Below, in pieces: positions 6,666 to 55,920 of a stretch of DNA of 64,000 nt (position 1 is the stretch's first letter; each line of letters opens with the position of its first letter). The stretch spans positions 20,026,001-20,090,000 of the forward strand of contig JAQFVV010000004.1 of the NCBI GenBank assembly GCA_028023455.1, in the 5' to 3' direction. Made by a program: the position numbers and the translations under genes. This stretch comes from Epiperipatus broadwayi. Lineage: Eukaryota; Animalia; Onychophora. The notes below the pieces were generated by a model that was not told where the DNA came from, ran no database searches, and saw nothing but the letters and a program-made list of their open reading frames with translations.

Positions 6666-7461
6666 GTTTTATAAAAACTGAAATTTAAGTTTAAACTTTA
6701 AAATGTAAATATAACTTTACATAATTTTTAAAATATAAAAAAAATTCTTCTCTTTTCAAACAAAATTTACTTCACAACACCCAATTCCAAATTTATAGAT
6801 TAATTTTAATGATGTGTGTAATTTCTTCCAACAATATGTGAAAAGTGGCAGACAATTTTAACTCACTATTAAAAATACAGTATAATTAATTTTTTTTGTT
6901 CATATCACAATAAATATAAATTTTAATCTATTTTGCTTTACAGAATTTTTTAATTCCTCTTATTTAACTTTAACTATAACAGAAAATAGTGTTTAAATTC
7001 TTAGAACTGTTCAAACAATTCAAAATTTTGGAAAAAATATCTTCCAATAGTAAATTTTCTTAGTAAAATTTTTTTATTTTTTTTTAAATATATGTACACA
7101 CATTTCTATTGAAACACTATATAATTGTTAATATACTAAAGTTTTAATTTTACAATAACCACATTTCACAATTTGAATTATTGTACAAAATTAGCAATAA
7201 TTTTTGATGCACCCATAGACATTTAATATTTTTTTACCTTACGGAATACACAATTTTTAATATCTCAGTCTCCAAAGCTTTTCTTTTATAGCTAGACTGA
7301 ATAACTTAACTGTTTTATTATTTCTCTAAGTATTAGTAAATACAATACTACCATTATATATATATATATATATATTATGTCTGTATTTTTAAAGCAATAT
7401 ATGTAATTATATAACTGAATATTTATAAATACAGTAACTAAATAATTAAAATTTTTATCCA

Positions 7462-7505
7462 CTTAGGAACGCTTTCGATTATCCCAGTAATCTTTGTCAA
7501 CTAAA
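7462..7505 (-). ncRNA. Minimal type I hammerhead ribozyme, U3-A8 core
   Basis: TTTAG TTGACAA A GATTA CTGGGA TAATC GAAA GCGT T C CTAAG: 5-bp stem I, 5-bp stem II, intact GAAA, NUH = UUC. Confidence 0.75.
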
Positions 7506-7555
7506 GCTTTGAACATTAAGATCACGGAATTGTGGGAAAATTAGCATTTCAAAGC

Positions 7556-7599
7556 TTTAGTTGACAAAGATTACTGGGATAATCAAAAGCTCTCCTAAA
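7556..7599 (+). ncRNA. Mirror copy of the U3-A8 hammerhead (G12 mutated to A)
   Basis: TTTAG TTGACAA A GATTA CTGGGA TAATC AAAA GCTC T C CTAAA. Confidence 0.65.
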
Positions 7600-7914
7600 T
7601 GGATAAAAAATTTAATTATTTAGTTATTGTATTTATAAATATTCAGTTATATAATTACATATATATATAAGTTTAATGTTAAACATCAAAAGATGGCATA
7701 ATACAAAGCTTTTCTTTCACGGCTAGATTGATAATTTTGTTACTCTGATTATTAGTAAATGCAATGCCACCATTATGTATAAGATTAATGTTAAACTCCC
7801 AAAGATAGCATATTAGATGTAGATATATTTGTCTGTGCATGTGTGTATTTGTACTATTTTTAAATATCAGTTAAATTTGTAAAATTTAAAAAAACAAATT
7901 AATTAGAGATATAC

Positions 7915-13234: not shown

Positions 13235-16200
13235 CAAGAAGAATATTATTGTAAATGATTAAAAAAAAAAAACATAGACAAGATATTTACAATAAAATCT
13301 ATTAAAAGTTTAGCTCGGTATCCCATAGCTAATTAAGAATTATTTATAAGAGTTGATTACATATTTTTGAATTGTAAGAAACAAATAGTTATCTATGAAA
13401 TTAATTATAGACAAGAAAAATATTATAAATTTAGTGAAATAAATGAGAATTGTAAGAAAATAATGTTGCCAACTTTATTGTTTGACATTTAAAGATATTA
13501 TAAACTATAGACAAAAAGATTATTATAATAAAGGATATAATATGTGAAAAATAAAGACAGCAAAGCATAAAGAGCAAGTTTGGTCATTCTCATTCTATAA
13601 GTAATGATGATGTTATTTCAAGAGTGATTATTCACAAAAATATTTATAATACTGATTTTGTTGATTTTAGAAGTATCAAACATTTATATAGATAGATGAA
13701 TAATTATGAATTTGATAGTAGTACTTATGTTAATGATTTCTTGTGGTATAAAAATTCCATATTTATATGGAATAAAAGAATTAGACCTACTATTTATGAT
13801 ATAAGAGATTATTTTGAGGTGACAACTGAGTTGTTTTATAAATAGCAGATCAGATTCAAATCTTATAAACTAAATAAATGTGATTTTTATATAGTATTCA
13901 TTTTGTTAATAATAGTTAGTTTGTTTACCTAAAATGCATGTTATCTAAAAAGGTATCTAAATATGAACCATATTTTTATATAAATAAAATATTCCCTGTT
14001 CCTAGGCATAAATTTGAAATGTGACAAAAAAAATAGATATGCATTGCATAAGCATATCAGACTTAATATAAGCCTCTCTGATAGAGATATAATATTTTCA
14101 GTATTCTTTGGTTTATCATCCACTATACAGTTGTCCCTATGCATTTTTCTCTTTTGCGTTGAGGTTTAAATATATACTGTGTGATGTTCTTAAATTATTT
14201 CTACTATTCAAAAATAATTTGTAAAATCCTGTCTGTTAATTTTAATAAGAGCATGTAAACATGGACAATTCTGAAATATGCATTTATATATTTTACCATA
14301 AAAACTCATTTTAATATATATTGATTTGTTTTTGTTTTGTTTTTATCAATGCATTCTTTATCTCAAATCCACTATATGACAAACATACATCAATATTTCA
14401 GGCACACACATATAATAATGAAGCACCATTATAATTAAAACTTTATAAATCATAAATTAGCTATTTTATTTGTTAAGTAACATTTCATTATTATGTATTA
14501 CAACTTCTTTATTTAAATATTATATATGTTGGCAGTAGTAAACTTGAATTGATATTTACTAACAGTAATCTCTCATTATATATTAAATTCACAGCCCACA
14601 GGCAGATAGAATAACAGTTAAACTGTTCTTGACATTTGTCTTTTAATAATATGTGTATAATAATTGGTTATAAAACTGTAATTTTTTATTAATGATGGGG
14701 AGAGCATTACAATGTTGAAATTAAAAAAAAGTATTAAAAGAACAAGAATAGCAAATTCAAGAATTAAAAAAAAATTTATACATATTACAAAAGTATAGGC
14801 AATATTAAATAATATCTGATTTTGATTAATTGTAACTATATAAGGGAGGAGAATGCTATGAATACAATTAAAATAACCCCAAAGTACTTTAATGAAGATA
14901 TAAATCTACAAAGACATTCACAAATATCAAAACATTTGGCTTAAATTCTGAATAAATTAGGAAAGTAAATATTCGTTTAAAGTAAGCATGGGCTTAGAGC
15001 TCAGAGTAGAATTACAACAGCCTCATTAGTGGTGAAGACATCATGGTTTTTATTTTATATTAGTTTCTAACTAATAAATGCTAGATATACATTAACTGAC
15101 TGCATTTGGATGTCTAATTAGATTGACTAGGCACAGACTATTTAAAAAAAATCCTAAACTTATTTATGATATAAAAAAAGAAGTAATAATTTAATAGAAT
15201 TTGAATCTCAAGTTTGTGGGTGTGGTAGGCAAATACTCTACCACTATATAATAATAATGTCTCCAGACAATACAAAACACTGAAAAGAAAATAAGAACAC
15301 TTCTCTATTTTATAAATGATTCTGAGATCAGGATTAGGAAAATGAGAATTTATAAAGAGAACAATATCATATGGTAAATTAAAATGCTAATCAAATACAA
15401 AACTCAAAGAAAACAAATTAATTTAATCTCTATAAAGTCATTTAACATCTACTGGTAGCACATTTTTGATATATCACTTATTGGCAATTTTCTAGATTGC
15501 CTTTTCTTTTTGCACTCAGCTAATTGTTAAAAATTTTACCCAATGTATTTAAATTGCATGTTACAACAAATTTAACTTAAAAGATACCATATCCTAATAA
15601 ATAAAAAAAAGTTCTTAATATTAAACTGGGAATTAATTGACTTAGTACTTGTCTTTGACTTTCACTATCAAAATAGTAGTGAAATATTATAATCTTATCT
15701 TTCTTATTGCATTGCTAAATTCATATAATATTAATACTATCTATATTCTTTATTACTTTTTACAATGCTTTTTTACAATCCACTATTGACAGTTTCGATT
15801 GCCCCAGCAATCTTCTTCAGAATTTCTTATTATATTTCCAAATCTCAAAGTCAGCAATGTACTATACAAATATAATGTCTTGCTTTGTTTTGAGAATTTC
15901 TAACAATTTTTTTTTTTTTAATTTCCTGGTAATGATAAGAAGATTGAATTATTATCAGTTAAATTCTTTTTTATTTGACAAATTAAAACATATATATCTG
16001 CACTAAACCATACTTGGTAGGTCACATGCAATAGTTCTCCCATAGTGACTGTATTTAATTCTAAGCCTTTCCATGATCACCTGAAACTGTGGATAACAGG
16101 AAACTATATTATATGTGTACTTAACTTATATGCACACACTTATAATACAATTCAGTTATTAAAATATTAATATTATTAAGATATTAATAAAAATAATTAA

Positions 16201-37679: not shown

Positions 37680-38423
37680 TAAATAATGAAAATACACTAA
37701 TCTGGAAAGATTATAATTTTTTAGAAAAATTTATAGTTTAGCACTACTTTATTCATAGAACAAATATAAATTTATATAAATAGAATTTATAAATTGAATA
37801 ATTTAAATATACCATTACATGATAATGCAATACATAAGTCTTTCTTGTTTATTGTGTTGATGTTATTTGCAGTAAACCATGCCTCTTTATATACACATCG
37901 ATCATTTTACTCAGTGCAAACAATTTTAAATTGTGGTCAGACTCGATTTCATGTTCTAAAAATATGACTTAATATTGGGATCTGTTTTAGTGTGTTTGAA
38001 TATATATATTTGTGTTGCACTAATCTTCTAGCGCAGTTGGCACAAGACTTACGATAGTAAATTGCATTACGTGTTAGTTCATTGCATTTAATTTTATAAA
38101 CTATTTGGAGACTTCAATCTGGAAATAATTAGTTAGTGTTATTCATTGTTTGATTAAGATTATGATGGGTTCTAAAATTGATATTGAATTTATTTGAGCT
38201 GATTGTTTTCATTTTTATAGATACATGTGGTGCAAAAGAAGGGCTGATCCATGCATTAATATTGTTATTAATGTTCCTGATATTTAAAGATACATAGAAT
38301 TTTTTAATATTATATACTAAATTGACTAAGTCTTTTATATAGTTTTCAATGTTCTCTTTTCTGTCAGCTTTAAACTTGGATATTTTATAGTTTCTGCACA
38401 AAAAACATTTGAAGCCACATGTA
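37680..38423 (-). mobile_element. Penelope-like element family Z, minus arm, 3' part (RT thumb, GIY-YIG, HHR relic)
   Basis: ORF 38129..38401 (CRNYKISKFKADRK...), then VYKIKCN...IYY...RLVQHKY. Reverse complement of 43125-43915. Confidence 0.8.
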
Positions 38424-41400
38424 TGTAGAAACTTTTAGGGAGAAAAAAGTTATAAGTAAAATATTAAAGAGACATTATTTTAAAGTAAAAAAAATAAAAT
38501 TATAATTAAATCAGATAAAAAAGATTAAATGCTAAAGTAAACAATGGTCTAATTAGTGCAGCCAAAATGTCATTGAAAGGAATGCAAGTAGATTCTTTTT
38601 AGATGAACGACGATTTATAAAAAAACTAATTAATTAAAAAAGCAAAGATAATAAGTAATTGCCTGTATGAAGCATAAGGAAATAATCACCTGAGCTGATG
38701 TGCAGTGTACCAGCCAATCATTGCTGGGATTTGAAAACAATGAACTGCCTCAGTACTAAGCAATGAAGAAAGAGTTCAGTTGATTCTTGAGATGTATCTG
38801 TGTAGATGGATATATATATATTTGAGCAGAATGTTTCTCTTTCCACAGTGACTTCAAGTATGGAGAACTGGCCTCCAAACATGTCAAGAGTCAGTTATTT
38901 GATCTTTATTATTTTTTATGCCTTCGAGCCCATTGATATAATAATTGTATGTATGTAACTAGCTAAACATTTAAGGGATCGTATAATTAAAGTTTACTTT
39001 AAACTTAACCATTAGTCATTATTAACACATTTGTGGAAGTGTGATATTTATATATTTGCACTCGTGGGAATACATTCTCTAACAGATAGACATAACAATT
39101 GACACAGTCACAGTCTTAATTCGGACCATTAAGTAAAGAAACAGTAAAGTTGGATAAAAGTCAAAACAATGTAAGTAACAATCGGGGAATTTGATGTCAG
39201 TGGCAAGTAGTTGGCCACTATATGTTCAACGTGTAAAGAAATACTTATTTATCAATAGTTAGAGATGATAAGTATAACATTGTGTCATTACTGTGCTTTG
39301 TGGGTAAAGGAGTTATTGAGATTAGCCAACAGTCTCACTGAATTGCTAACTCCTGAAGAATGTACATACGATCATGTTAAAGAGCATTTAGCTAACCATT
39401 TTAACCCCCATTCTCAAGGCATGTCACTAGACTGCAATTTTGGTCCAGAAATCAAGGTTGGAATGAAAGCATAAAAGATTATGACAGCACTCTACATAAA
39501 TTAGCAAAGAATTGCATCTACAGATCTTTTCTAGATGAAGCCCTGCTGGAACAATTACTTACTGGTAAGTACAATGATAATTTATAGCAATAATTGTTGG
39601 CCATGAGCAATTTAGATTATAGTGAAGCTATAAAACATGGTATAGCTTAGGAACTCATGCTGGAACAATCTTGGCTTGCCAAGTTCAAAAGTCACTGCAA
39701 ATAGCAAACAGAGATCTGTAAAACCATGAGCAAAGAATTGTCAGAAATCAATGAAAATACAGTTAACAGTGAAACCAAGTTTATATGTTTCTGCTATGGA
39801 AAAAAGGATCACAAGCCAGCAATTGCTATCATAAAAGAGAGCATTGTAGTAAGTGTAAGAAAAGAAGCATTTGAAAAAAATGGACAAAAAAAGACTTCAG
39901 TGTAGACAGAAATGATACTAATAGTAATCATACAACAAAGAGTTGAGAAAAGCACTTGACTAATATTGAAAAGATGGCAACAACTAAGAAGGATAGTGTT
40001 AATGGTCAAAATTAAGGTATGTGACCAGCCCATATTCATGGAAGTTGACAGTGGCAGCAGTATATCATTGATGTTAGTCCATGATTGGTATACTGCAACT
40101 TCCAAGACTAAGAAAAGACCCAGTATAAATAAAAGTGGCCTAAAGGTGTGAGATATAAATGGTAAGGCCATTAGAATAAAGGAAGTTGTTCAAGCGCAGA
40201 TATGTAACAGTCAGGGCAAAATCATCATACTATCAATAAATGTAGTACATGCCCCCATCAACCCTATATTAGATCGAGACTGCTTCAGAAAAATGGGAAT
40301 TAAAATAATGTTAACTAAAAAAATAAATAGCCCCAAGAGAAAAAAAATTTCTGAGAGGATAAAGACAAGTTTGAGTAAAATAGAGTTACTCAAAGAGAAA
40401 AAACCTTTCCAGCAGCCAAAGCAAGTCAGAGAAGAACCAGAATGACCAGGAAAAGAAGCTAACAAAGTACAAAGCCATACTAAAAGCAAGAGTAAAAAAC
40501 AAAGTGGTAGCTCATTGGACAGCTGAAGACAGCAGCTACAAATGGATTGTGAAGAAGTTTTGTGAAGGCTGGCCAAATCAATGTCCCACTTTCCTTCACA
40601 AAGAATTATGGAATGCCTGGGATCAACTGTCATTACACAAAGGCTGCATTATGAAAGGTGATTGTACACTGATTCCAGTCAAAAGTAGTCAGCACATAGT
40701 AAAATGGCTGCAGAATAGTCAACAAAACATCAGCAGAGCTAAAGCTCTAGAGTTTAGTTATGTCTGGTGGCCAGATATTAGAGTAGACCTGCGGAAACAT
40801 AAAAATAATTATGGTGATTTTCAAATAGCTACATCTCCCAGAACACATCTTGTGAGTTGAAACATAATTCACAACAGCATGCTAAAAGAAAGTTTTAAAA
40901 ACCCTACATTTTTCTAATAACTCGTATTAAGTTCAGAAATTAAAAACTGATCTCTGAACTTGGGGGAAGTAATATTATGTATGTATATGTTTATATTTTC
41001 TTACATACACATATATCCATGTAGAAACTTTTAGAGAGAGAAAAGTTATAAGTAAAATATTAAAGAGACAGTCTTTTAAATTTAGAAAAAAGTTATAGTA
41101 GATAAAAAAGATTAAATGCTAAAAATGAACAATGGTCTAATTAGTGCAGCCGAAATGTTATTGAAAGTAATGCAAGTAGATTCTTTTTAGATAAATGACG
41201 ATCTATAAAAATAACTAATTAATTAAAAATGCAAAGATAATAATTAATTGCCTGTACCGAAGCATATGGAAATAATCACCTGAGAGGATGTGCAATATAC
41301 CAGACAATCATGGCTGGGATTTGAAAACAATGAACTGCTTCAGTACTAAGCGATTGAGAAAGAGTTCCCGTTGATTCTTGGAGACTTTCCACAGTGACTT

Positions 41401-41626
41401 CAAGTGTGAAGAACTGGCCTCCAAAAGTGTCAAGAGTCAGTTAGGACTTTTTAAAGATCCTACTGATCTTTATTATTATTTATTTGCCTTCAGGACCATT
41501 GATGTAATAATTGTATATATGTAAATAGCTAAATCTTTAAGGGATCATATAATTAAAGTTTACTTTAAAATTAACCATTAGTCATTATTAACACACTCAT
41601 GGAAGCCTGTTATATATGAATTTGCA
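38424..41626 (+). mobile_element. Internally deleted Ty3/gypsy LTR retrotransposon with truncated outer ends
   Basis: LTRs 38424-39097 and 40973-~41626, visibly diverged. PBS-like attgacacagtc at 39098; PPT gggggaag at 40962. Remnants of gag, protease (MEVDSGS) and integrase zinc-binding domain (SRAKAL..SYVWWP); RT, RNase H and integrase core absent. Confidence 0.85.
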
Positions 41627-42145
41627 TACCATTTGATTTATCTTCATTTTGTATAGTTCAAACCAAAGAAAATAAGTGACATAACATCCTATGTATCAAT
41701 AATTGTTTTTTCTTCAGCATAGATAAGGACATCATCTACTAGCACATATAAAAAGATGATATTGTTGTAGCAAACTTTTTTGGAATGACTGCTAATTCAA
41801 ATTGATTCAGTATTATACTACAAATTATTCCACTTAATGGTGGTCCCATAGACCAGCCATGTTGTATTGTATAAAATCCTCCATTGAAAAAGGTCACAAT
41901 GTCGTCATCCATACATTTAAGAGCATCAACAATAAAATTTATTTTGTGCTTATTAAATTTTAAATTAATTAAAGTATCACGAATTATACTATGAGATAGT
42001 GGGTGTGATACTGAACCATAAAGTTTCATTATATCTAATGAGGCAAGTTTATTGTTAGAGTTATACATTTGTGAATTAAAAATTTGTATGCATACAAATG
42101 AAGATTTTATAGTAAATTTTCCAAAACCAGCTTAATCAAATTAAA
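41627..42145 (-). mobile_element. PLE family Z, minus arm, RT part
   Basis: ORF 41739..42068 contains RT motifs 3-4 (LASLDIMKLY; HGWSMGPPLSG). Reverse complement of ~42375-42900. Confidence 0.85.
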
Positions 42146-43030
42146 TTAAAATTTAAACATGTGAAGAATATAATTTAAAAAGAGAAAAATATAAATTTAT
42201 TGTTTTAATATTAAGATATTATCAAAACAAAGCAACGAATAAATTTGCCTATAAAAGGTTTATCCAACAGCAGCTATTCCTCAAGAATTTTTGCAAAAGT
42301 AAAAATACATTAAAAAAATCAATCTCTTCAACTTTTAATTGTAGACAGCAAAATTAATAGCCATATTGATAATTGGTCAAGTTGGTTTTGGAAAACTTAA
42401 TACAAAATCTTCATTTGAAGGTACATTAATTTTAAATTCACAAACATATAACTCTAACAATAAACTTGTCTCATTAGATGTAACGGGAACTTTATGATTC
42501 AGTATCAGCCTCACTATCTATAAGTATAATTCATGATATTTCAGTTAATTTAAATTTTAATAAGCACAAATTAAATTTTATTGCCGGTGCTCTTAAATGA
42601 ATGGATGGAGTCATTATAGCCCTTATTAATGGAAGATTTTATACAGTAGAACATGGCTGGTTTACGAGGCTACTATTAAATGGAATAATTTGTAGTACGT
42701 TATTGAATCAATCTGAATTAGCAGTCATTCCAAAAAAAGTTTGCTACAGCAATATTATCTTTATATATGTGCTACAAAGGTGATATCATTATCTATGCTG
42801 AAGAAAAAAATTATTGATACATAGGATGAGTTATATCAAGTACCTTCTTTGGTTTGGACTATAGAAAATGAAGATAAATCAAATGGTATAAAAATTTTAA
42901 ATATATATATATATCCAACATTCAAATACTGTACACATATAAATTATAAAACCTATCAGTATTTGTGGTGTAATTTATCTGCATTCATATATTCCAATTT
43001 CACATAAATGGGCTGGCTTCAAATGTTTTT

Positions 43031-43123
43031 TTTTTCATATGTCAAATGCGTTGACCAGGAAGTGAACCTGGGCCAGCTGCTTGGAATGCAGCTATGCTAA
43101 CCACTAGGCCACCAACGCTTGAG
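43031..43123 (-). mobile_element. tRNA-Gly(TCC)-derived SINE with poly(A) and 16-bp TSD
   Basis: tRNA-like part 43047-43118 GCGTTGGTGGCCTAGTGGTTAGCATAGCTGCATTCCAAGCAGCTGGCCCAGGTTCACTTCCTGGTCAACGCA. TSD ggcttcaaatgttttt at 43015-43030 and 43124-43139. Confidence 0.92.
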
Positions 43124-43816
43124 GGCTTCAAATGTTTTTGTACAGAAAATGTAAATTATGCAAGTATGAAGCAGATAGAAAAGACAGCATTGAAAACTAT
43201 ATAAAAGACTTAGTCAATTCAGGGTATAATATTAATATATTAAATAAAACTCTTTAATAATTCTATTCATCTTTAAATAACAGGAACATTAATAACAATC
43301 TTAATGCATATATCAGCCCTCCTTTTGCTCTGCATATATCTAAAAAGATGAAAATAATTTGCTCAATCAAATAAATTCAATATTAGTTTTAGAATCCTTC
43401 ATAATCTTAATCAAATAATGAATAACATTAACAATAAATTATCTCCAGATTAAAATCTCCAAATCTATAAAATTAAATGCAATAAACCAACATGTAATGC
43501 AATTTATTATGGTGAGCCTCGTGCCAACAGCACTATAAGATTAGCACAACACAAATATGTATACAAACACACCAACAGGTATCATTATTAAATCTACATT
43601 TTTAGAACATGAAATCTAGTCTGGCCATAATTTTAATCTACTTAATACTAAAGTTGTTAATGCTGAGCACAATGATCAAAAAAAATATAAAGAGGTGTGG
43701 CTTATTGGAAATAACATCAACACAATAAACAAGAAAGACACATGAATTGCATTATCATGTAAATGTTATATATTTAAATTATTTAATTTATATAATCTAT
43801 TTAAATAACTTATATT

Positions 43817-43855
43817 TGTTCTACGAATATTATTGTCAGGTCGAAAGCTAAGCTA
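43817..43855 (+). ncRNA. Decayed A3-U8 hammerhead of PLE family Z
   Basis: gttct ACGAATA T tattgtcaggtc GAAA gc t a agcta, located just 3' of the GIY-YIG region. The mirror arm has ATGAATA...gtgctaaact with stem II deleted (37727-37765). Confidence 0.5.
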
Positions 43856-44219
43856 TAAATTTTTCTAATAAATTTCAATCTTTCCAGATTAGTGTACCTA
43901 CTTTATTTATTTTATATTCAAATTAATGAAAAAAGTAATCTTATTGAGTTATAAAAGAATAAATAATATTTAGAAATTAATTCGTAATCTCTATAAAGTC
44001 CAGTGCAATCTATAGATGCAAGAATATACTTTAGTCTAACCCAATCAAAAGTTTCAATGCTGCTGAAGAAACTCCTAGGAATTTCTCTAAAGGTATCGCA
44101 GATGATTTAAGAGACCCAAAACAGGAGAAACATTATGCCATATTTTTGAATTAACTGGCTTGGGAAGTTATACTAAAGTAATAATGGAAGAACAAGATGT
44201 TTCTATGGGTACTGACCAC

Positions 44220-44808
44220 GAAAGCACTGGAACAAAATGTGGACAAAAATGTGCAAAAAGGACTGAAGACAAAAGAAAGTGCAGCTGTTAAAGCACATGT
44301 GGAAGAGAAAGAAAAAAATATAGCTATTATGATAATTAAAAAAGATTGTCCACACATTGTATATGAATGCATGCAGAATATATTAAAATCAGTAGACACT
44401 CTAACTGTTATTCTTGTCCAGTGAGGCAGTTCACAAAATGAACAGGAACATGTACAAGAAGAAAAAGATAAAGTAGAAGAAAATGCAACTATTAATATGG
44501 ACAAAAAAGCATAGATGAAAGCACTGGAACAAAATGTGGACAAAAATGTGCAAAAAGGACTGAAGACAAAAGAAAGTGCAGCTGTTAAAGCACATGTGGA
44601 AGAGAAAGAAAAAAATATAGCTATTATGATAATTAAAAAAGATTGTCTACACATTGTATATGAATGCATGCAGAATATTTAAAATCAATAGACACTCTAA
44701 CTTATTCTTGTCCAGTGAGGAAATTCACAAAATGAACAGGAACATGTACAAGAAGAAAAAGATAAAGTAGAAGAAAATGCAACTATTAATATGGACAAAA
44801 AAGCATAG
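44220..44808 (+). repeat. Near-identical 297-bp tandem duplication
   Basis: Units 44220-44516 and 44517-44808 differ by only a few substitutions and small deletions. Confidence 0.95.
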
Positions 44809-45157
44809 TTTACAAAGTCCATAGCAAATGTAAAAGAAAATGAGTATACATACATAACAATTAAATATAGTCTATAAATCTCTGTCTTAATTAATTGCAG
44901 TTGCTTACATAGATATTGTATATCTTGTCTATAAACTATTCCATAATGAATGCTTTTTATTCAACCAACACTCTGCTGATGACTACATATACATTTAATA
45001 CAGCAGCTCATTGCAGGTTTTTTTACATGTCTTTCCTGCATAATCTCAGCTTACTTGCATATACTTTTATTATCATTTGAAGATAATCAAATTGTATGTA
45101 AATATTTTTTACAGTGAATACTAATAATGAAAGGTGCAAATTATATATGTACTGTCT

Positions 45158-45844
45158 TGTTATGTTGTAGTACGATTAATATTAAGAAAAAATACGTTTG
45201 AAACTGTGTGTACTCCAGAAGTTAAAAGTGCTAAATAATTACATGTGAAAGTAAACGAGTAGATTTAATAAAAATGAAAATTAGAAATTGCAAATGGTTT
45301 TTCATATAGATATTTTATAAAAAGCAAGGTGTAAAACAAGATGGAAGATCCGAATAAATAATTAATTAAAAGAAGGATTAAAAATGTAAAGAACAATTTA
45401 ATTAATTAGTTCAGAAATAAGTCCAGAATAATTTGGTGATTAAAATTGATAAGGAATAAACAATAGAAAAAAAAAGTAGATATAATCTAACAGAGAAAGG
45501 ACAGATTAGTGTGAGTCCTGATTTTCTGAGAGACTAAAGTGTAGCGCAAATTTAGAACAGGACCAACGATGGGAGGAGAACCAGATATTCAGGTCTGAAG
45601 GTACCAAAGACCGACCTAGGGTAATTATACAGACTATACCTGTCTTATTATTATTTTTGTAAGCCTTACAGGTGCTAGTACAACTAATAATAATTCTGTT
45701 TATAAATGTTTGTTATTTTTCATACTAATAAAATCTTGTATCTGTTAAGTGGGATATCTTAATTTTATGCAAGAGAGTAATCGTTACTTGGATTAGGTGT
45801 ATTTGGTTGTTTCTCGTAAGTCACATTAAATCAAGAACATCACA
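45158..45844 (+). repeat. 5' LTR
   Basis: About 96-97% identical to 49781-50472 by manual comparison. Confidence 0.95.
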
Positions 45845-45940
45845 ATTTTGGTGCAGTCGGGAGAAAACCTGTTTTTCAAGCTTATGAAAGAAATACACCG
45901 AACAGTAATTTAGAAGTCGGTGAGTTGTTAAAGAATTAAA

Positions 45941-46742
45941 ATGTCGATAGGACAAACTAATATATCAGAATTTGGGATAGATAATCCACATGAATGACCC
46001 TTTTATGTGCTCCAATTACAAAATTATTTTAAGTTAAATACTATTATTGAAAATGACAGGAAAGTAGCAGCGTTATTATGTTTGTCAGGTAAAAAAGTTA
46101 TTGAAATAGTAAACAAATTGTATAATGGACAAGTTACATATAGTAGTAACTACGATGACCTGGTTCAAAGACTACAGATTATTTTAGCCCAAGACCATTG
46201 AAGTATTTAGCTAGATTAAAATTGAGGAACCGCAAACAAGACAACTCGAATCGATAAAAGAATATATTGTTCTACGCCAATTAGCAAAGAATTGTGAGTA
46301 CGGCAACTTTGTGGAACAAATTCTTATTGACCAGTTGTTATGGGGAATGAAGGACAATAAATTGTGTCAATCATTATTAATTCAAACTCAGATGACTTAT
46401 GAAGGTGCTATTCAAAAGGGAATAGTATATGAATTAGTGGTAGAACAAGCTTTAGCTTTTTCAAATAGAATGGAGGAAAACTCTAGGAATACTATTTTTA
46501 AAATAGAGAGAAAGGATAAGGATTGTACTAAAGAAGGGAAAAGTTTCAAAATAAAATGTTTTTGTTGTGGCAAAGTAGGTCATTTGTCTAAAAGCTGTAA
46601 ATGGAGGAACGAAAAATGTTACAACTGTGGGGGCAACGGCCATTTAGCAGCAGGGTGCAAAAACCCTAAACAAAAATCTGAATACGGTAAAGACCAGAAA
46701 CAGTGGAAATCAGTAATTAAAAAAAAATATCTTAAAAAATGA
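45941..46742 (+). pseudogene. gag with two CCHC zinc knuckles, disrupted
   Basis: ATG at 45941; CFCCGKVGHLSKSC and CYNCGGNGHLAAGC; internal stops and a frameshift. Confidence 0.9.
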
Positions 46743-46755
46743 GCAGGATCAATTC

Positions 46756-49548
46756 ATGCTAGAGATTAAGTTAAGTAACAAAAAAGTAGAAATGGAAATA
46801 GATAGTGGCTCAGGAATTTCGTTAATATCTATGAAAAAGTGGAAGGAAATATCCACAGAGAGCACTCAGATTAAAATACAGAAAGCTAACATTAATGTTA
46901 GAGATGTCAATGGGAACCTGATCAAGTTAATTGGGAAATCCGAAGTAATAGTTGGTTTTAAAAATAAAAACTACAAATTACCTATATATAGTAGATAAAG
47001 AGATTAGTCTGTTAACAGGAAGAAACTGGTTTAAAGACCTAGGCATTAAATTTAATATAGTTAAAAAGGTCTCGGTGAAAAAGAAATGATAGAGTTATAT
47101 CCAAATTTATTTATGGAAGATTTAGGTTTGATAAAATCAAAGCCCGTTGACTTGCACTTAAATGAAAATGCTAAACCGGTTATTTGTAAACTGAGAAAAA
47201 TACCTTTTGCACAAAGGCAGTTAGTAGAGGAAAAAATAGAAGCATTAGTTAAAAAAGATGTGTTATCCCCAGTCGAGGAGGCGGAATGGGCCATGCCGAT
47301 TGTTGTGTAGCAAAACCAGACGGAAAAATTAGGCTGTGTGGAGATTATAGAACAACAGTAAATAAGTATCATAATAAGGGAGCTTACCCGGTACCGAATG
47401 CACGTGAGATTCTCAGTAATCTAGCTAAAGCAAAAAATTTTGCGAATTTGGATTTAAATTCGGCATATCACCAACTAAAAGTTACAGATGTTACAGCTCG
47501 GTTATTAACAATTAGGACCCCTTTTGGATTATTCAAATGTGCATCTCCCTTTTGGAATTACATCAGCTCCAAACATATTTTAAGCAAAAATAAATTCAAG
47601 ATTACAAGGTTTGGAAGGAGCGATGCCATATTATGATGATATTTTGATTGCTGCAACTTCACCAGAAAAATTAAGAAGTAAAATTCAGGAAGTATGCGAG
47701 AAACTAAATAACGCAGGGGTAAAATTAAATGTTAAAAAATGTGTTTGGGAAATGGAAGAATTAAAGTTTTTAGGCCATCTTATTTCGGAAAAAGGAAAAG
47801 TCCATTAACTGATAAAATTAGGGCAGTCAAAGATGTTCCAAGCCCAATAAATGTCAAGCAACTTCAAGCTTTTCTAGGTTTGATTAATTTTTTTGAACCT
47901 TTTCTAAAGAACAAAGCGATGGTCGCAACTCCTCTATATGAACTGCTATAAAAAGATCAGAAATGGATTTGGAATACCAAACATGAAAAAGCATTTAAAG
48001 AAGTTAAGGAATTGTTAACCTCTAGTAGCTTATTAGTGCATTTTGATAGCGACAAAGACGTCACTATTACTACGGATGCATCACAATATGGAATCAGAGC
48101 AGTTTTAGCACATCAAATAGATGGGCATGAATGTCCTGTAGCTTAGGCTTCTCGGACTTTGTCTAAAGCTGAAAAAAAATTATAGTCAGCTGGACAAAGA
48201 AGCTTTGGCAGTCATGTTTGCTGTGAAAAAATTTCAGCAGTTTATATATGGATGGAAATTTGAATTAGTAACAGATCATAAACCTTTGTTAGGGATTATA
48301 GGAAAAGATCGTCCGATGCCAGAGCATTTAAGTCCATGCATGCTCAGATGGGCTAATACACTTACTGCTTACAATTTCAATCTAAAATATCAAAAAGGAA
48401 AGATAATTTCTCATGCGGATGCTCTATCTAGAGTGCCCAGAAATAATGACAACTATGAAACTGATGTGGAAGTTAATCACATTGACAATATGAAATCACA
48501 AGTCATAAATAGTAAAGTAGTTCAGACATGGACAAATAAAAATGATGGGTATGCGTTACTTAGGAAATGGATAAGCAAAGGTTGGCCTAATAAAAAACCT
48601 GAAAATGTAGCAATGGGGTTTTGGGTCAATAGAGACAAATTGTCAGTCTGTAAAGGGTGTATTAATATGGGAGACAGGGTAGTTATACCTCCTATAGGGA
48701 GAATGAAAGTTCTAGAACTTTTGTATCAGGGGCACCCAGGCATCATGCGAGCTAAAGCTCTAGCTCGGAATTATGTTTGGTGGCCGCAGATAAGTAATGA
48801 TATTGAAAAGTATATTAAGAAATGTGATAAATGTAAGTCTGAAATAGCTCTGCCGAATAGGGAATATTCTTCTTGGCCTAAACCAATATATCCATAGCAA
48901 AGACTTCATATAAACCATGCGGGTCCAATAGAAGGAAGAAATTATTTAATTTTAATCGATGCTTTCTCTAAATGGATAGAATGTCATGAGGTTAAAAATA
49001 CTAGTGCGAACGAAACAATAAAATGTTTAACAGACATATTTTATATACATGGATTTCCACAAGCAATCATTGACAACGGAACTGGATTTGCGAGTGAAGA
49101 ATTAAAAATACAATTTGGAAAATGGGACATCAAACATGTATTTACACCCCCTTATCACCCTGAATCAAATGATTTGGCGGAAAATGTGGTAGGGCAAGTG
49201 AAGAAATATTTAAGAAAAAACAAAAATATGGATATGAAAAACATCTTACAGGAATTCATGATGTATCAACATATAACTCCATCAACAATGACTGGAAAAT
49301 CAGCAGCTGAAATGTTATTCAGTCGGAAAATACGAACTAATTTAGATTTTTTGCGACCTGATACACACATATATAAATATAACCAAGACCCAGTGAAAAA
49401 CTTTAACATTGGAGATGTGGTAATATTCAGAGATATACTACGTAAAAATGGGTTAATGGAAAAATTGAACGGGTGCAATCAAAGCAATTTTATGATATTA
49501 AAGGCGAAAATGGAAACATATAAGCGTCACAAAAATCATATTCGATAA
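46756..49548 (+). pseudogene. pol (protease, RT, RNase H, integrase), disrupted
   Basis: EIDSGSG; IRLCGDYR; LDLNSAYHQ; YYDDILI; TDAS; VTDHKPL; HPGIMRAKALARNYVWWP; PPYHPESN. Several stops and frameshifts. Confidence 0.95.
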
Positions 49549-49780
49549 AGTGAAGATGACATTCAACTAGATATATTCCAGCAGTTCCAACATGTAAATG
49601 AAAAGAATTCAGATAAACAAATGATACTGACCGACATCGAAGAAGATGTGGTTGAAGAGGATAAAATACAGATTGAAAAGAGGAAATCACCTAGACCAAT
49701 ATGATGTAAAAGAAGCCCTTTGTACCTAAAAGAATATGTATAAGACAGATAAACCATAACTTCTGGAGTGGGGGAGGAAT

Positions 49781-50472
49781 TGTTATGTTGTAGTATGATT
49801 AATATTAAGAAATAATACGTTTGAAACTGTGTGTACTCCAGAAGTTAAAAGTGTTAAATAATTACATGTGAAAGTAAACGAATAGATTTAATAAAAATGA
49901 AAATTAGAAATTACAAATGGTTTTTCATATAGATATTTTATTAAAATCAAGGTGTAAAACAAGATGGAAGATCCGAATAAATAATTAATTAAATGAAGGA
50001 TTAAAAATGTAAAGAACAATTTAATTAATTAGATCAGAAATAAGCCCAGAATAATTTGGTGATTAAAATTGATAAGGAATAAACAATAGAAAAAAAAGTA
50101 GATATAATCTAGCAGAGAAAGGACAGATTAGTGTGAGTCCTGATTTTCTGAGAGACTAAAGTGTAGCATGAATTCAGAACAGGACTAACGATGAGAGGAG
50201 AACCAGATATTCGGGTCTGAAGGTACCAAAGACCGACCTAGGGTAATTATACAGACTATACCTGTCTTATTATTATTTTTGTAAGCCTTACAGCCTTATA
50301 GGCGCTAGTAGAACTAATGATAATTCTGTTTATAAATGTTTGTTATTTTTCATACTAATAAAATCTTGTATCTGTTGTGGGATATCTTAATTTTATGCAA
50401 GAGAGTAATCGTTACTTGAATTAGGTGTATTTGGTTGTTTCTCGTAAGTCACATTAAATCAAGTACATCACA
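49781..50472 (+). repeat. 3' LTR
   Basis: Follows the PPT; ends catcaca before the TSD. Confidence 0.95.
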
Positions 50473-50543
50473 TGTCTACATGCCATAAATATATACTCTG
50501 ACATGTTCTCATAAAAAAAGCTATAACTGCATGAAAATTATTG

Positions 50544-50590
50544 AAGCTTAGCACTTTCAAGGGCATTGAATGTCCTCATAGTCATAGCCT
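50544..50590 (-). ncRNA. Minimal type I hammerhead, A3-U8 core (PLE-X)
   Basis: AGGCT ATGACTA T GAGGAC ATTCAAT GCCCTT GAAA GTGC T A AGCTT. Confidence 0.75.
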
Positions 50591-51936
50591 TAAAATGTGT
50601 CAGATTCCTTCATATTTATGACATTAGGATTGTTAGCTATATGCTACATCTCTTTAATCTTCCTTTTAGGGTCATTTAGCTCAATGCATGTTATGTTGGT
50701 GGTTATGGGGTCAAATGTATGGCTCATTACGTTTTAGTGCCTGAGAAAGATTGATTTCATCTCTGGATTATCTGTGGCTTGTTTGTAAAGGTATTACGAA
50801 ATCTGAGTAGAGATGCCTGCATAGGATTTGCTCTGGTTGTAGACAGCAAAGCTGATTTTTATTCTGCAACAATTAGGAATAATTCTGTATTTCACACATG
50901 ATTGGAGATATTTGACTCATTGCGAAAGGATGATTGTTGTTCAGAATCAGTTTGTATTGATGATAATTATCCATAGTGTATGTCCTCATAGTCATAGCCT
51001 TGAAATGTACATAATTTAGGAGTGTATATATAGGTAATAGTTTATTCAAAGTATATGTAAATCATATTGTCCATTTGTTCAAAAGGGAGGGAGAGGCAGA
51101 TTCCTTCTTATTTATGACATTAGGGTTGTTAGCTAAATGCCATATCTCTTTAACCTTCTTTTTAGAATCAATTCACTTGATGCTTGCTATGTTGGCAGCT
51201 ATGGGTTCAAATATATGGCTCATTATGTTTTGATGTTCAAGGAATATTGATTTATGCTCTGGATTAACTATGGCTTGTCTGTAAAGATATGTGTTGAGAA
51301 ATCCATGCGCATGATAGGCCATAATTTATAGCACTGCCTCCTGCTTGAGGGCATGTGATTTTCAATATGGTGTGCAAAGTTTTCTCTGTGTAGAGTTTGC
51401 CCTTAGTACTATTTATTAATCTATTGTGGGAGGAATATGATAGCTTACTTAATGTGTTTGTGAATGAGCTTTATTCATGTTTTTGAATATCTGTGGTATG
51501 TAGGGGAGCAGTATCCAGGATTTGTCATCTTTAGTTGTATTTGATTTCATTTTGTATAAAATTGTTTGACTCTCCCTATGAGGTCAGTAGATAACTCAAT
51601 GTTGGCTTTTCAAGCAACTTCAAATTTGCATAGGTGGTAGTTCCTGTAGAGAAACAATGACAAACCAGTGTATTTATGTGAATAGGGGAGATGGATTTGG
51701 GGTGTGTGAAATCTCTTTTAAGATTTGAGATGCATCTTGTAATTTAGCTAGAGAATATTTCCGTTTGATAGCCCATGATGATGTAGATTTTGCCTCAAAA
51801 TTTGTTTTGATTTACTTTACTTGATTAAAGAATTCAGGACACATATGTCATCTACATATCAGTGTAAATAAGATTGGTACTATTTGTGATATATTTAAAA
51901 AGGAACAGGTTTTCAATGTCATTAAGATAAATACTT

Positions 51937-53553
51937 AATATATATCCGTCAACCTCTTCTTTTTCTAGAATCTTCGCTAATATTAAGCTCCACGAGCCTG
52001 ATAAACCTTTAAGACTGATGATCAATTTTGGAAGGGCACACTATTTTAGCATGGAAGCTTTGGTTAATTGCTGGCTTATTGACACATTAGGCTTTGGTGA
52101 TTATACCATCAAATCATCTTTCAAGTTTGTAGAAAAAATTAAACACGCATTTATACCAGCTGGGTTCAAAATCACATCATTTGATGTGGCTGAGCTATAA
52201 GGCTCCATAGACCATAAAAAATCAATTGAAATAGTCAATGAGACATTAATTGCAAGAAACTGCCCACCTACATGAGCCAAATTCATCATTGATTTTTTAA
52301 AATGGCTTGATCTAAATATAGTTGCTATTTTCAGGGATAAGTGGTTTAGTATGAATAATAGATGGCCAATGGGTCTCCCATTAAGTGGTATAATGGCAAG
52401 TGTTGTACTTGACCATTACGAGAAGCAAATACTACCTGCATTCTTCATGTCAACCCCACATATGATATACACACATTACATTGATGATACATTTATTGCA
52501 GCCCCAGAAGACATCATTATTAATCTCCACAACAGCCTCCAGAATAAAACTAAGCTTACTTTTACTACAATTTGGGAAAACCAAGACAAACAGATCAAAT
52601 ATCTTGACATATGTTAGTAAAAATATAGATAAGCTGGACTACCAAATGGTAGTCAAACCTTTGGAAGTACGGGGTCTGAAAAACCCTAATTCTTACATGC
52701 CTCGCTCCCACAAACTTGCAGCCCTCTCTTCATTCATGTTTAGGAACCATAACTTGTGCAAATACAAGGCAGATAAAAGAAAAAATCTTATCAATTATAT
52801 AGCTGATTTAAGAAAAATAGGACACATTCATCCATCAAGAGAAAAGTCAACAAATTTTTCTATAAAATAAACCACAATGACAAAGAAAGAAAACAAACCG
52901 AGAATCCTAATCCCATACAATCACTCAACAGCCAAAAGCCTCATTAATAAACTATCAAGTGACTTTGAAGTCACTTTCCGTTCACCTCCCAACACCAATA
53001 GACTGATAAATAACACCAAAGACAGGATCAAACCTGAACTCACCCCTCAAGTTGTGTACAAAATCACCTGCTCCCAAAGAAATTGTATGGCAACATATTA
53101 TGGAGAGACCAAAACTAACATTGCCACCAGAGTAGCTCAACACAGATACCTTTATAACAGAACCAAAACAAAGCTTAAAGGTAATTCGGTTTTTGTCGAG
53201 CATGAAAGAGCCACTGGACACGCTTTTCTACCCACCACAGCCAGTGTCATTTGCTCTGAAACAAATGACACCAAACGTAAAGTTAGGGAAGCTTACTACA
53301 TCGTAAGTGACCCATCAGCAATCAACAGAAGAGAGGCCTACTTTTCCCTATCTCGAAAATGGTCCACGTAACATCTGCATATAAATTTGCATAAAATTTG
53401 CATTAATATTATAGTTAGTAATCAAATACAAGTCACCATGAATATGGGACTATAAACTGTCCCGAAAGTGCTTGGCGGTAAATTTTAATAATTTCACAGA
53501 CAATTAATAGCTTCATTATCTGTGCGCAGAGCACATATATATATTAATTTATT
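51937..53553 (+). mobile_element. 5'-truncated Penelope-like element family Y with 15-bp TSD
   Basis: RT (SFDVAEL; WPMGLPLSG; YIDD) and GIY-YIG (VYKITC..YYGET..RVAQH..EH...GH..EAYYI) ending at stop 53371. TSD ttaagataaatactt at 51922-51936 and 53554-53568. Confidence 0.92.
53432..53479 (+). ncRNA. Minimal type I hammerhead, A3-U8 core (PLE-Y)
   Basis: GTCACC ATGAATA T GGGAC TATAAACT GTCCC GAAA GTGC T T GGCGGT, 60 nt after the GIY-YIG stop codon. Confidence 0.78.
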
Positions 53554-54952
53554 TTAAGATAAATACTTGAAAAACTTGAGATAATCGCACTTATGAGTAG
53601 ACCCATTGGTCATCCATCCATCATGTAATAATAGTTGTCTATCAAATGTGGAGTTAATGTTGTTGAGTAATTGATTTTCAGGAGTTCTGATTTTACTATG
53701 CTAGTAGGCTGTTTTCTGTTGATGAAGCCATATAGCTCTGTTATATTGGGGTAAGTTATTTTGTGATAAGTTCCTAATTTTGAACTTTTATTTATATTTA
53801 GAGACTCAAAGGAAGAGTTAATGGCATAAGCACCATAAACTATCTGGCCTGTGATCCATTGGTTAATCATTTTAATAGTGCTGCAGTAGTGCAAGCCTCG
53901 AAATCTAACATCAATCTAAGTGGTGTAATTGGTTTGTGCAATTTGGCATTGGCAAACATTCATAGTGATGTTGTAGCTGATGGGTAAATTTTGTAGTATT
54001 CACCTTTAGAAAAATCCTTATTGCAGTGTTTGCCCAATATGTCACTTATAAATTTATCTTTGTTCCTCTTTATATTGTAATTCGGAAAAGATTAAATTTC
54101 AATTTATTTATCTGAAGAATCATTTTCTCTATGAAGTCAGCTTTATTCATTAAGACAAATCTATTTTCTTTATCTTCCTTCAAATATATTGTGCTATTTT
54201 TGGAAAGGAACTCCTGGGTAGCATCTATGTGCATCCTCCAATTGTCATTGGTGACTTTGATAAACTTGCATTAAATCGATTTTGCAATTTGTGTAATTAT
54301 TTTTTTATCTTTATTTGGGTTGTCTGAGAGACCAGCCTCAACATCAGGAATTAACCCTATGATTGGCTCATTTCATTTGTCCCTGATGAATCTTGGTCTA
54401 TGTTCTATCTCTGCCTTCATATTAGGAGGAGGAGCCTTAAATCTATATTTGTCCTTAGGGGGGGAGGGTTGATGCCTTGTTTAGCTGCTAGAAAGATGAT
54501 TTTATATTTGAATTTAACATTGAACTTTGAGGTCAGATTGCTTCATTTATTTATAGTGTGTTCTGGGGCTACTATGATACAGTGTGAGATTTTATTCAAG
54601 TGTTTTTTTGTCCTTTTTGTGAGCCATTTTACATAAAGTTATAATTCTTTTTAAGTAGATATAGCTGTAGCTGCAAAATGATTCTGTCCCAGTTGTAGAT
54701 AGCAAAGTTGATTTTTATTCTGCAGCAATTAGGAATAATTTTGTATTTTACCCATGTTTGGGGAAATTCCATTTATTAAGCAAAGATGGTTGTTGTTTGG
54801 CTGAGTTTTAAAATCAGTTTATATTGACGATAATGGTCCATAGTGTATTGTAATTTATAAAATTAAGAAACTTTTCTTAGACCATTATAAGTCATAAATA
54901 TATGCACTGACATATTCTCCTAAGTAAAGTTATAAGTGTATGAAAATTATTG

Positions 54953-54999
54953 AAACTTAGCACTTTAGAGGGCATTAAAAGTCCTCATGGTCTTAGTCT
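54953..54999 (-). ncRNA. Decayed hammerhead in the PLE-X upstream pseudo-LTR
   Basis: AGACT AAGACCA T GAGGAC TTTTAAT GCCCTC TAAA GTGC T A AGTTT. Stem I shows a G-C to A-T covariation relative to the 50544 copy. Confidence 0.6.
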
Positions 55000-55429
55000 T
55001 GAAATATGCATAATTGTAAGAGTAGATATAGGCAATAGTTTATTCAATGTAAATCATATTGCCCATTTCTTCAAAAAGGGAAGCAGGATTCCTTCCTATT
55101 TATGGTATCAGGATTGTTAGCTGTATGCTATGCTTCTTTAACCTTCCATTTAAAGTAATTTCACTCAATATATGCTATGTTGACAGCTATGGACTTCAAT
55201 GTATGACCGGTTATGTTTCGGTGGATTAGCTTATGCTCTGGATTATCTGTGGTTCATCTGTAAAGGTATCTGTGTTGGTAAATCAGAGTAAAGAGGCATG
55301 ATCATGATTCTCCATAATATATAGCATTGTAATTTGCTTAAGGGCATGCAATTTTATATAAAGTGTTGTAGTTTGCTCTGTATGGAGTCTGTCCTTAGAA
55401 TTATTTATTAATCTATTTCTTGTTGGAGT

Positions 55430-55920
55430 ATTCCCCAATGCCAAATGGCACAAACCAACATCCCATTTAAGTTAATGTTAGACTTAGGAAGCATGTACTA
55501 TATATACTACAGCACCATTAAAATGATCAATCAATGGTTGACTGACCAACTACATTATGGTGCTTACACGCCTTCACATAATTGAGCTACATGACTCCAT
55601 TAACAGAAAACAGCCTATTAACATAGTAAAATCAGAACTCCTAAAAATCAATTACTCACCAACATGGATCAATTTTATAACAGACTGTCATTTTTGGCTC
55701 TATAACACATTTATCATCACAATCGACAGATAACATTATTACATGACAATGGATGGTTAATGGGTCTACCCATAAGCAGGAGCTCCTTCCTAAATATATC
55801 AAAAATACTCCCAACCTTATTTACACATGACATATGGATGACATATTTATATGTAGCCCAGAGTCTTTAATCAAGGAAATCAAAACAAACCTTGAGACAA
55901 AATCTGCATTATTATGGACA
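55430..55920 (+). mobile_element. Inverted RT segment of PLE family X
   Basis: Roughly 80% similar to the reverse complement of 53570-53960, and continues to MDDIFICSPE. Confidence 0.75.

Follow-up and report, generated by a model that had tools for sequence, protein, structure and literature searches.

Penelope-like elements of Epiperipatus broadwayi carry minimal hammerhead motifs with an A3-U8 core pair

Here, we describe hammerhead ribozyme motifs with an altered core in a 64,000-nucleotide (nt) stretch of the genome of the onychophoran Epiperipatus broadwayi (assembly GCA_028023455.1, contig JAQFVV010000004.1, forward-strand positions 20,026,001 to 20,090,000; hereafter the window, to which all coordinates refer). 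The motifs lie just 3′ of GIY-YIG endonuclease (EN) remnants of Penelope-like elements (PLEs) of three families, X, Y, and Z, and the core of the full motifs is of the form AUGANUA instead of CUGANGA. Our favoured explanation, to which we assign a probability of about 0.6, is that they are genuine PLE minimal hammerheads of the dimer type by descent and architecture, in which C3-G8 was replaced by A3-U8 in an ancestor of X and Y (probably also of Z) and was kept during multiplication, and which would cut as dimers. The comparisons presented below make it very likely that the motif is a genuine hammerhead homologue, conserved with A3-U8 in its core.

Anatomy of the hammerhead motifs

The initial annotation had described six such stretches, each behind a PLE GIY-YIG remnant, and all six were recovered at their places, each 50–70 nt 3′ of a GIY-YIG remnant that shares its strand. 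The motifs and their parts are as follows.

53432-53479, plus strand: full minimal type I hammerhead motif of family Y, core AUGAAUA
53432-53437 and 53474-53479, plus strand: Y helix I
53438-53444, plus strand: Y core, A3 to A9
53445, plus strand: Y bulged U
53446-53450 and 53459-53463, plus strand: Y helix II
53464-53467, plus strand: Y G12 to A15.1
53468-53471, plus strand: Y helix III insert GUGC
53472 and 53473, plus strand: Y U16.1 and U17, predicted cut 53473/53474
50543-50590, minus strand: X2, full family X hammerhead motif, core AUGACUA at 50585-50579, predicted cut 50549/50548
50981-51000, minus strand: X1, 5′ half only, comprising the 5′ strand of helix I, AUGACUA, the bulged U, and GAGGAC
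54953-54999, minus strand: X3, decayed family X motif with an AAGACCA core and UAAA replacing GAAA
43817-43855, plus strand: Z1 remnant, ACGAAUA at 43823-43829, then GAAAGCUAAG
37727-37765, minus strand: Z2 remnant lacking helix II and GAAA through deletion, AUGAAUA at 37756-37750, then AGUGCUAA

The Y motif reads GUCACC AUGAAUA U GGGAC(8 nt)GUCCC GAAA GUGC UU/GGCGGU and the X2 motif reads AAGGCU AUGACUA U GAGGAC(7 nt)GCCCUU GAAA GUGC UA/AGCUUC, with the slash at the predicted cut, a helix I of 5 base pairs (bp) in X2, and a helix II of 5–6 bp in both. The conserved core set (U4, G5, A6, N7, A9; G12, A13, A14; A15.1-U16.1; H17) is complete in Y and X2 and incomplete in X3, Z1, and Z2. The minimal type I fold with an AUGANUA core that had been proposed is thus present in full in Y and X2, which are homologues of the PLE minimal hammerheads at the expected site. 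In Y, X1, X2, and Z2, the C3 and G8 of CUGANGA are replaced by A3 and U8, and the Watson-Crick pair is kept. The extra U after A9, previously ascribed to the full copies, is seen in Y and X2 and also in X1 and X3.

The remaining copies are damaged in different ways. X1 is broken off at its junction with the 5′-truncated X2 copy, while X3 has lost U4, U8, and G12 to mutation and retains G10.1-C11.1. Z1 and Z2 carry different deletions and retain only pieces of the core and of helix III, and no helix I or II could be drawn in either. Therefore, of the three families said to share the fold, X and Y carry a foldable motif, but Z was rejected as a third foldable family and holds only a homologous remnant.

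In helix III, the segment AGUGCU pairs with itself (A-U, G-C, U.G, G.U, C-G, and U-A, the two G.U pairs being central), and a monomer hairpin cannot close, since its loop would be only 2 nt. The earlier description of this stem as self-complementary with a 2-nt loop holds and corresponds to the published dimer-type design.

Conservation of the motif between families X and Y

The single-stranded core of Y and that of X2 are identical except at the free N7 (A in Y, C in X2) and at H17 (U in Y, A in X2), both of which are permitted changes. Within helix I, three of the five pairs are changed on both sides with pairing retained: 2.1-1.1 is C-G in Y and U-A in X2, 2.4-1.4 is C-G in Y and G.U in X2, and 2.5-1.5 is U.G in Y and A-U in X2. 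Inside family X, X2 likewise has G-C and X3 has A-U at pair 2.3-1.3. Between Y and X2, loop II is unrelated and helix II is similar. Accordingly, the suggestion that the families differ in both stems I and II applies to helix I, which covaries, but not to helix II.

These comparisons support A3 and U8 as a state common to families X and Y and not a private decay of one copy. The 3′ untranslated regions (UTRs) of X and Y also align beyond the motif, including a block that contains AAUAAU, and because this points to shared ancestry we read A3-U8 as one old, retained change and not as repeated independent covariation. On this alignment, the pair in X and Y is probably a single ancestral event that has since been kept. 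The initial annotation's view of the swap as selected covariation and not decay therefore stands insofar as both families have A3 and U8, but the alignable 3′ UTRs reduce it to what is probably one event.

The Penelope-like element remnants carrying the motifs

The window is AT-rich (about 22–35% GC), and its 36–57 kb portion is a nest of retroelements. A tblastn search of the window with the 164-amino-acid family Y open reading frame (ORF) as query found six GIY-YIG EN remnants, some with reverse transcriptase (RT) sequence, and EN identity between families X, Y, and Z in this search was 30–47%. The elements and their remnants are listed below, the rows marked "tblastn" deriving from that search.

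51939-53554, plus strand: family Y PLE remnant with RT fragments, EN, 3′ UTR with hammerhead, and tail
52018-53368, plus strand: Y EN/RT match (tblastn)
52877-53371, plus strand: family Y GIY-YIG endonuclease ORF, intact, 164 amino acids
50602-51759, minus strand: family X EN/RT remnants together, X1 and X2 (tblastn)
51759-51068, minus strand: X1 EN/RT remnant (tblastn)
50841-50602, minus strand: X2 EN remnant, 5′-truncated (tblastn)
55426-55068, minus strand: X3 EN remnant (tblastn)
42487-43763, plus strand: Z1 RT/EN remnant (tblastn)
38419-37820, minus strand: Z2 EN remnant (tblastn)

The Y ORF has two Cys residues (of a CCHH set) between GIY and YIG, followed by conserved R, H, E, and N residues. 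Its alignment with 20 relatives revealed invariant Y61, C65, C70, Y74, G76, R85, H89, H109, H115, and E138, as well as a near-invariant N150. RT fragments lie upstream of the ORF, and the Pfam matches of the family Y element are RVT_1 and GIY-YIG, both weak. An exhaustive profile search identified 1,195 relatives of the EN ORF, the nearest at 39% identity, and a word-indexed protein search with the same ORF returned no matches. A CX2-5CxxC linker upstream of the EN separates Neptune and Nematis, where it is present, from Penelope and Poseidon, where it is absent (PMC8557442); the 64 residues of the Y ORF that precede the GIY motif include no Cys, and the reading frame farther upstream is broken.

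The minus-strand X copies meet PLE RT fragments of the plus strand in head-to-head orientation at 51760-51940 (X1 against Y) and at 55426-55475, where X3 faces RT fragments at 55475-55920; these arrangements represent complex nested or inverted PLEs.

Abundance, subfamilies, and possible transcripts

Logan contigs of four runs were placed on 50400-55500 at 80% likeness. Their summed depth, which is not a copy number, rises over Y from about 5,600 (51939-52109) to 225,000–275,000 (52965-53648) and drops to about 350 beyond 53649, against a depth of about 30 for single-copy contigs in the same analysis. Together with contig loose ends, depth places the 3′ boundary of family Y at about 53544-53554, in TA-rich sequence. 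This depth shape is that of a very abundant, 5′-truncated retroelement family ending at 53544-53554. Family X is multi-copy too, with depths of 1,700–23,000 at its 3′ end. Truncation at the 5′ end, as in PLEs, is thus seen both in the succession of X1 and the 5′-truncated X2 and in the depth gradient and family ends of Y.

Among the letters listed, no strongly supported alternative letter occurs inside 53432-53479. The loose ends further revealed a subfamily in two organisms (A and B) in which the stretch leading up to 53436 terminates in ...CUCG, giving a helix I 5′ strand UCGCC that pairs perfectly with GGCGG. RNA-labelled runs under two species labels contain exact words of the Y motif and tail, a possible sign of transcription.

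In the family Y 3′ tail (53504-53554), many contig matches begin or end at 53503/53504 and at 53544/53554. The tail holds an inverted repeat, UGUGC...GCACA (53521-53535), and its TA-rich end fits PLE tails and their target bias for TA repeats.

Comparison with known hammerheads

As described by Cervera and de la Pena (2014, PMC4209133), PLE minimal hammerheads are type I motifs residing in pseudo-long terminal repeats (pseudo-LTRs), in which a bulged base usually separates A9 from a long helix II. Y and X2 resemble them in their type I topology, their location in a 3′ UTR or pseudo-LTR behind an RT-EN ORF, their short helix I, the bulge 5′ of a 5–6 bp helix II, the GAAA, a helix III so short and near-palindromic as to imply action as a dimer, and the U-H cut site. 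Unlike them, Y and X2 have AUGANUA and not CUGANGA as their core.

As an outgroup sample, the 3′ flanks of 80 metagenomic PLE endonuclease loci were scanned for hammerheads. A hammerhead was found 80–600 nt 3′ of the EN in 22 of the 80, and the layout was the same in 22/22: a bulged base and a helix II of 4–7 bp, then GAAA-CG/GC/CGCG-UH. The strict scan yielded 18 C3-G8 and 4 U3-A8 motifs, with one A-A match on the control strand, and a looser scan yielded 27 C3-G8 and 8 U3-A8 motifs, with the other combinations at background. In both scans, A3-U8 was absent from the sense strand of the 80 loci. The helix III segments in this sample are perfect palindromes (ACGU, AGCU, or ACGCGU), whereas Y and X2 have AGUGCU, with two G.U pairs in the dimer.

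In four of the metagenomic loci, L001 (1395-1460), L009, L011, and L030, the 3′ UTR hammerheads have U3-A8 cores (UUGAAAA or UUGAGAA) and share the bulge and the palindromic helix III.

Natural U3-A8 variants have been published (Perreault et al. 2011, PMC3088659), among them those of the Schistosoma mansoni PLE Cercyon, with about 1,300 hits (PMC4209133). The motifs described here resemble these variants in being borne by PLEs and in having an otherwise preserved core whose 3-8 pair is swapped for a different Watson-Crick pair. However, U3-A8 preserves a pyrimidine at position 3 and a purine at position 8 and is reached by two transitions through a U.G wobble, whereas A3-U8 flips purine and pyrimidine and takes two transversions; since these have no paired intermediate, A3-U8 would be the less expected swap. 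The same two positions have been exchanged for another Watson-Crick pair by engineering (Przybilski and Hammann 2007 and Nelson and Uhlenbeck 2008, both cited in PMC3884650; Roberts et al. 2023, PMC9901934). Those are laboratory mutants of tertiary-stabilised hammerheads, whereas the present motif is natural, minimal, of the dimer type, and high-copy.

No report of a natural A3-U8 hammerhead was found in full-text literature searches. The novelty is narrower than the initial annotation implied, because PLE hammerheads that covary to U3-A8 have been on record since 2014 (PMC4209133). Its expectation that CUGANGA-based searches would miss the motifs was borne out, as Rfam reported no hammerhead in 36000-57000 even at E ≤ 10. 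The exact pattern of the Y motif had zero matches in metagenome, prokaryote-genome, and viral collections.

Two further hammerhead-bearing sites lie elsewhere in the window. A head-to-head inverted repeat of 117 nt (7397-7513 and 7548-7664, 95% complementary), typical of an inverted PLE insertion, carries in each arm a U3-A8 hammerhead with UUGACAA, a bulged A, helix II GAUUAC/GAUAAUC, and GAAA-GCGU-UC. At 15793-15820, on the minus strand, there is a canonical CUGAAGA minimal hammerhead with a bulged A and helix II GAUUGC/GCAAUC. Its helix II and bulged A match those of the U3-A8 motif at 7500, its flanks are unrelated, and no EN remnant lies near it; it may belong to a non-autonomous element.

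Other repeats near the motifs

On the minus strand at 43047-43118, inside the Z1 remnant and opposite to it, lies a sequence resembling tRNA-Gly(UCC) (41.4 bits in Rfam; called by ARAGORN as well), possibly an insertion of a tRNA-derived short interspersed element. Gypsy-like LTR retrotransposon ORFs with stops and frameshifts occupy 46000-49700 (plus strand) and 39265-40860 and include CCHC gag, protease, RT, RNase H, and integrase-like pieces. A direct duplication with a 297-nt period spans 44151-44669, with identical 48-mers at 44263 and 44560 and a repetitive minus-strand ORF of 172 amino acids.

Alternative explanations and predicted cleavage

AUGANUA is a common heptamer in DNA of 27% GC, and the motifs could in principle be mutated canonical hammerheads or AT-rich look-alikes, a view to which the AT-rich composition and the clear decay of X3, Z1, and Z2 lend some colour. 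To gauge this, we used a descriptor (helix I with at least 4/5 pairs, core, a bulge of 0–1 nt, a helix II no shorter than 4 bp, GAAA, an insert no longer than 8 nt, U-H) with all 16 N3/N8 combinations. In the window, its A-U form matched exactly Y and X2, the U-A form matched twice, the U-G form once, and the others not at all. Dinucleotide-shuffled windows gave an A-U match in 18% of shuffles, yet with a mean of only 0.2 matches against the two full ones observed (P(≥2) = 0.015). Both matches are on the correct strand and less than 70 nt from an EN remnant, a target of about 0.5% of the two strands, so chance is no serious explanation. Decay fares no better against two transversions (C to A and G to U) common to copies of at least two families, the compensatory changes in helix I, and the presence of the motif at very high depth in family Y with no strong alternative letters among those listed. 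Taken together, we consider chance or decay very improbable.

A weightier alternative is a hammerhead-derived but catalytically dead structure, whose shape is kept for another use, for example so that the PLE RT can recognise the 3′ UTR or so that the 3′ end is defined, or which simply rides along, cleavage being needless for transposition. A comprehensive pairwise mutagenesis of a type III hammerhead showed strong rescue only for the G3-C8 swap and low activity for the other doubles, A-U and U-A included (Roberts et al. 2023, PMC9901934). Canonical PLE minimal hammerheads already cut poorly in vitro, weakly even as dimers (PMC4209133), some PLE clades thrive without hammerheads, and the authors of that survey suggested that the ribozymes may simply parasitise PLEs (PMC8557442). 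Family Y, moreover, is very abundant despite its altered core. On the other hand, the positions that X and Y have kept in common coincide exactly with the catalytic core (U4, G5, A6, A9, G12, A13, A14, A15.1, U16.1, and H17), both members of the 3-8 pair have been substituted to give a different Watson-Crick pair, for which there is no obvious need in a purely structural role, and only Watson-Crick 3-8 combinations were enriched in the 80 other PLE loci. A dead structure is possible, but we regard it as rather doubtful.

Besides this mutagenesis, the weak cutting of canonical motifs, and the success of hammerhead-free clades, several features of the copies themselves weigh against the favoured explanation of genuine dimer-type hammerheads. 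Helix I of the Y copy in this window forms 5 of 6 pairs owing to an A×C mismatch, which reads as private decay because helix I of the subfamily, UCGCC/GGCGG, pairs perfectly. Pair 10.1-11.1 of X2 is G.U, the Z copies do not fold, and X and Y are not fully independent witnesses given that their 3′ UTRs align beyond the motif. The family-wide state of positions 3 and 8 and their linkage are matters that we infer. Minimum free energy folding of monomers and dimers did not return the full hammerhead fold, a method that is uninformative for such minimal motifs.

In favour of cleavage, the swapped 3-8 pair is isosteric, and the conserved nucleotides are the catalytic ones. C3-G8 is a Watson-Crick pair, and variants that covary at 3-8 are described in citing papers as active in vitro (PMC3088659). 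From the observed anatomy, position, covariation, and abundance, we infer the following course. An isosteric A3-U8 would have replaced the core Watson-Crick pair C3-G8 in the ancestor of X and Y (probably also of Z) and been retained while the elements multiplied. The A15.1-GUGC-U16.1 segments of two motifs, located either on one transcript (as tandem or pseudo-LTR copies) or on two transcripts, would then pair to form helix III. Each core would cut after H17, at 53473/53474 in Y and at 50549/50548 in X2, and cutting may trim the element RNA to unit length. Meaningful self-cleavage of the A3-U8 motif stands somewhat short of an even chance. Only tentatively do we propose that it is a catalytically competent natural hammerhead that works as a dimer, belongs to a retrotransposon family of thousands of copies, and would be the first in nature to combine a purine 3 with a pyrimidine 8.

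Significance

Positions 3 and 8 lie in the active site of the hammerhead, and the 2′-OH of nucleotide 8 is taken as the general acid. A3-U8 extends a published kind of core covariation, and since U3-A8 covariation in PLE hammerheads was already known, the advance is incremental, with cleavage itself a prediction. A natural, high-copy A3-U8 family offers a ready test of how far the bases matter beyond their pairing, and of what PLE hammerheads are retained for, cleavage or shape. Because CUGANGA-based searches and Rfam models miss these motifs, censuses of hammerheads and of PLEs or retrozymes in such genomes are undercounts. If the motif is catalytically competent, the base of the general-acid nucleotide 8 would be dispensable provided that it pairs with position 3, and current hammerhead descriptors would systematically miss whole PLE lineages.

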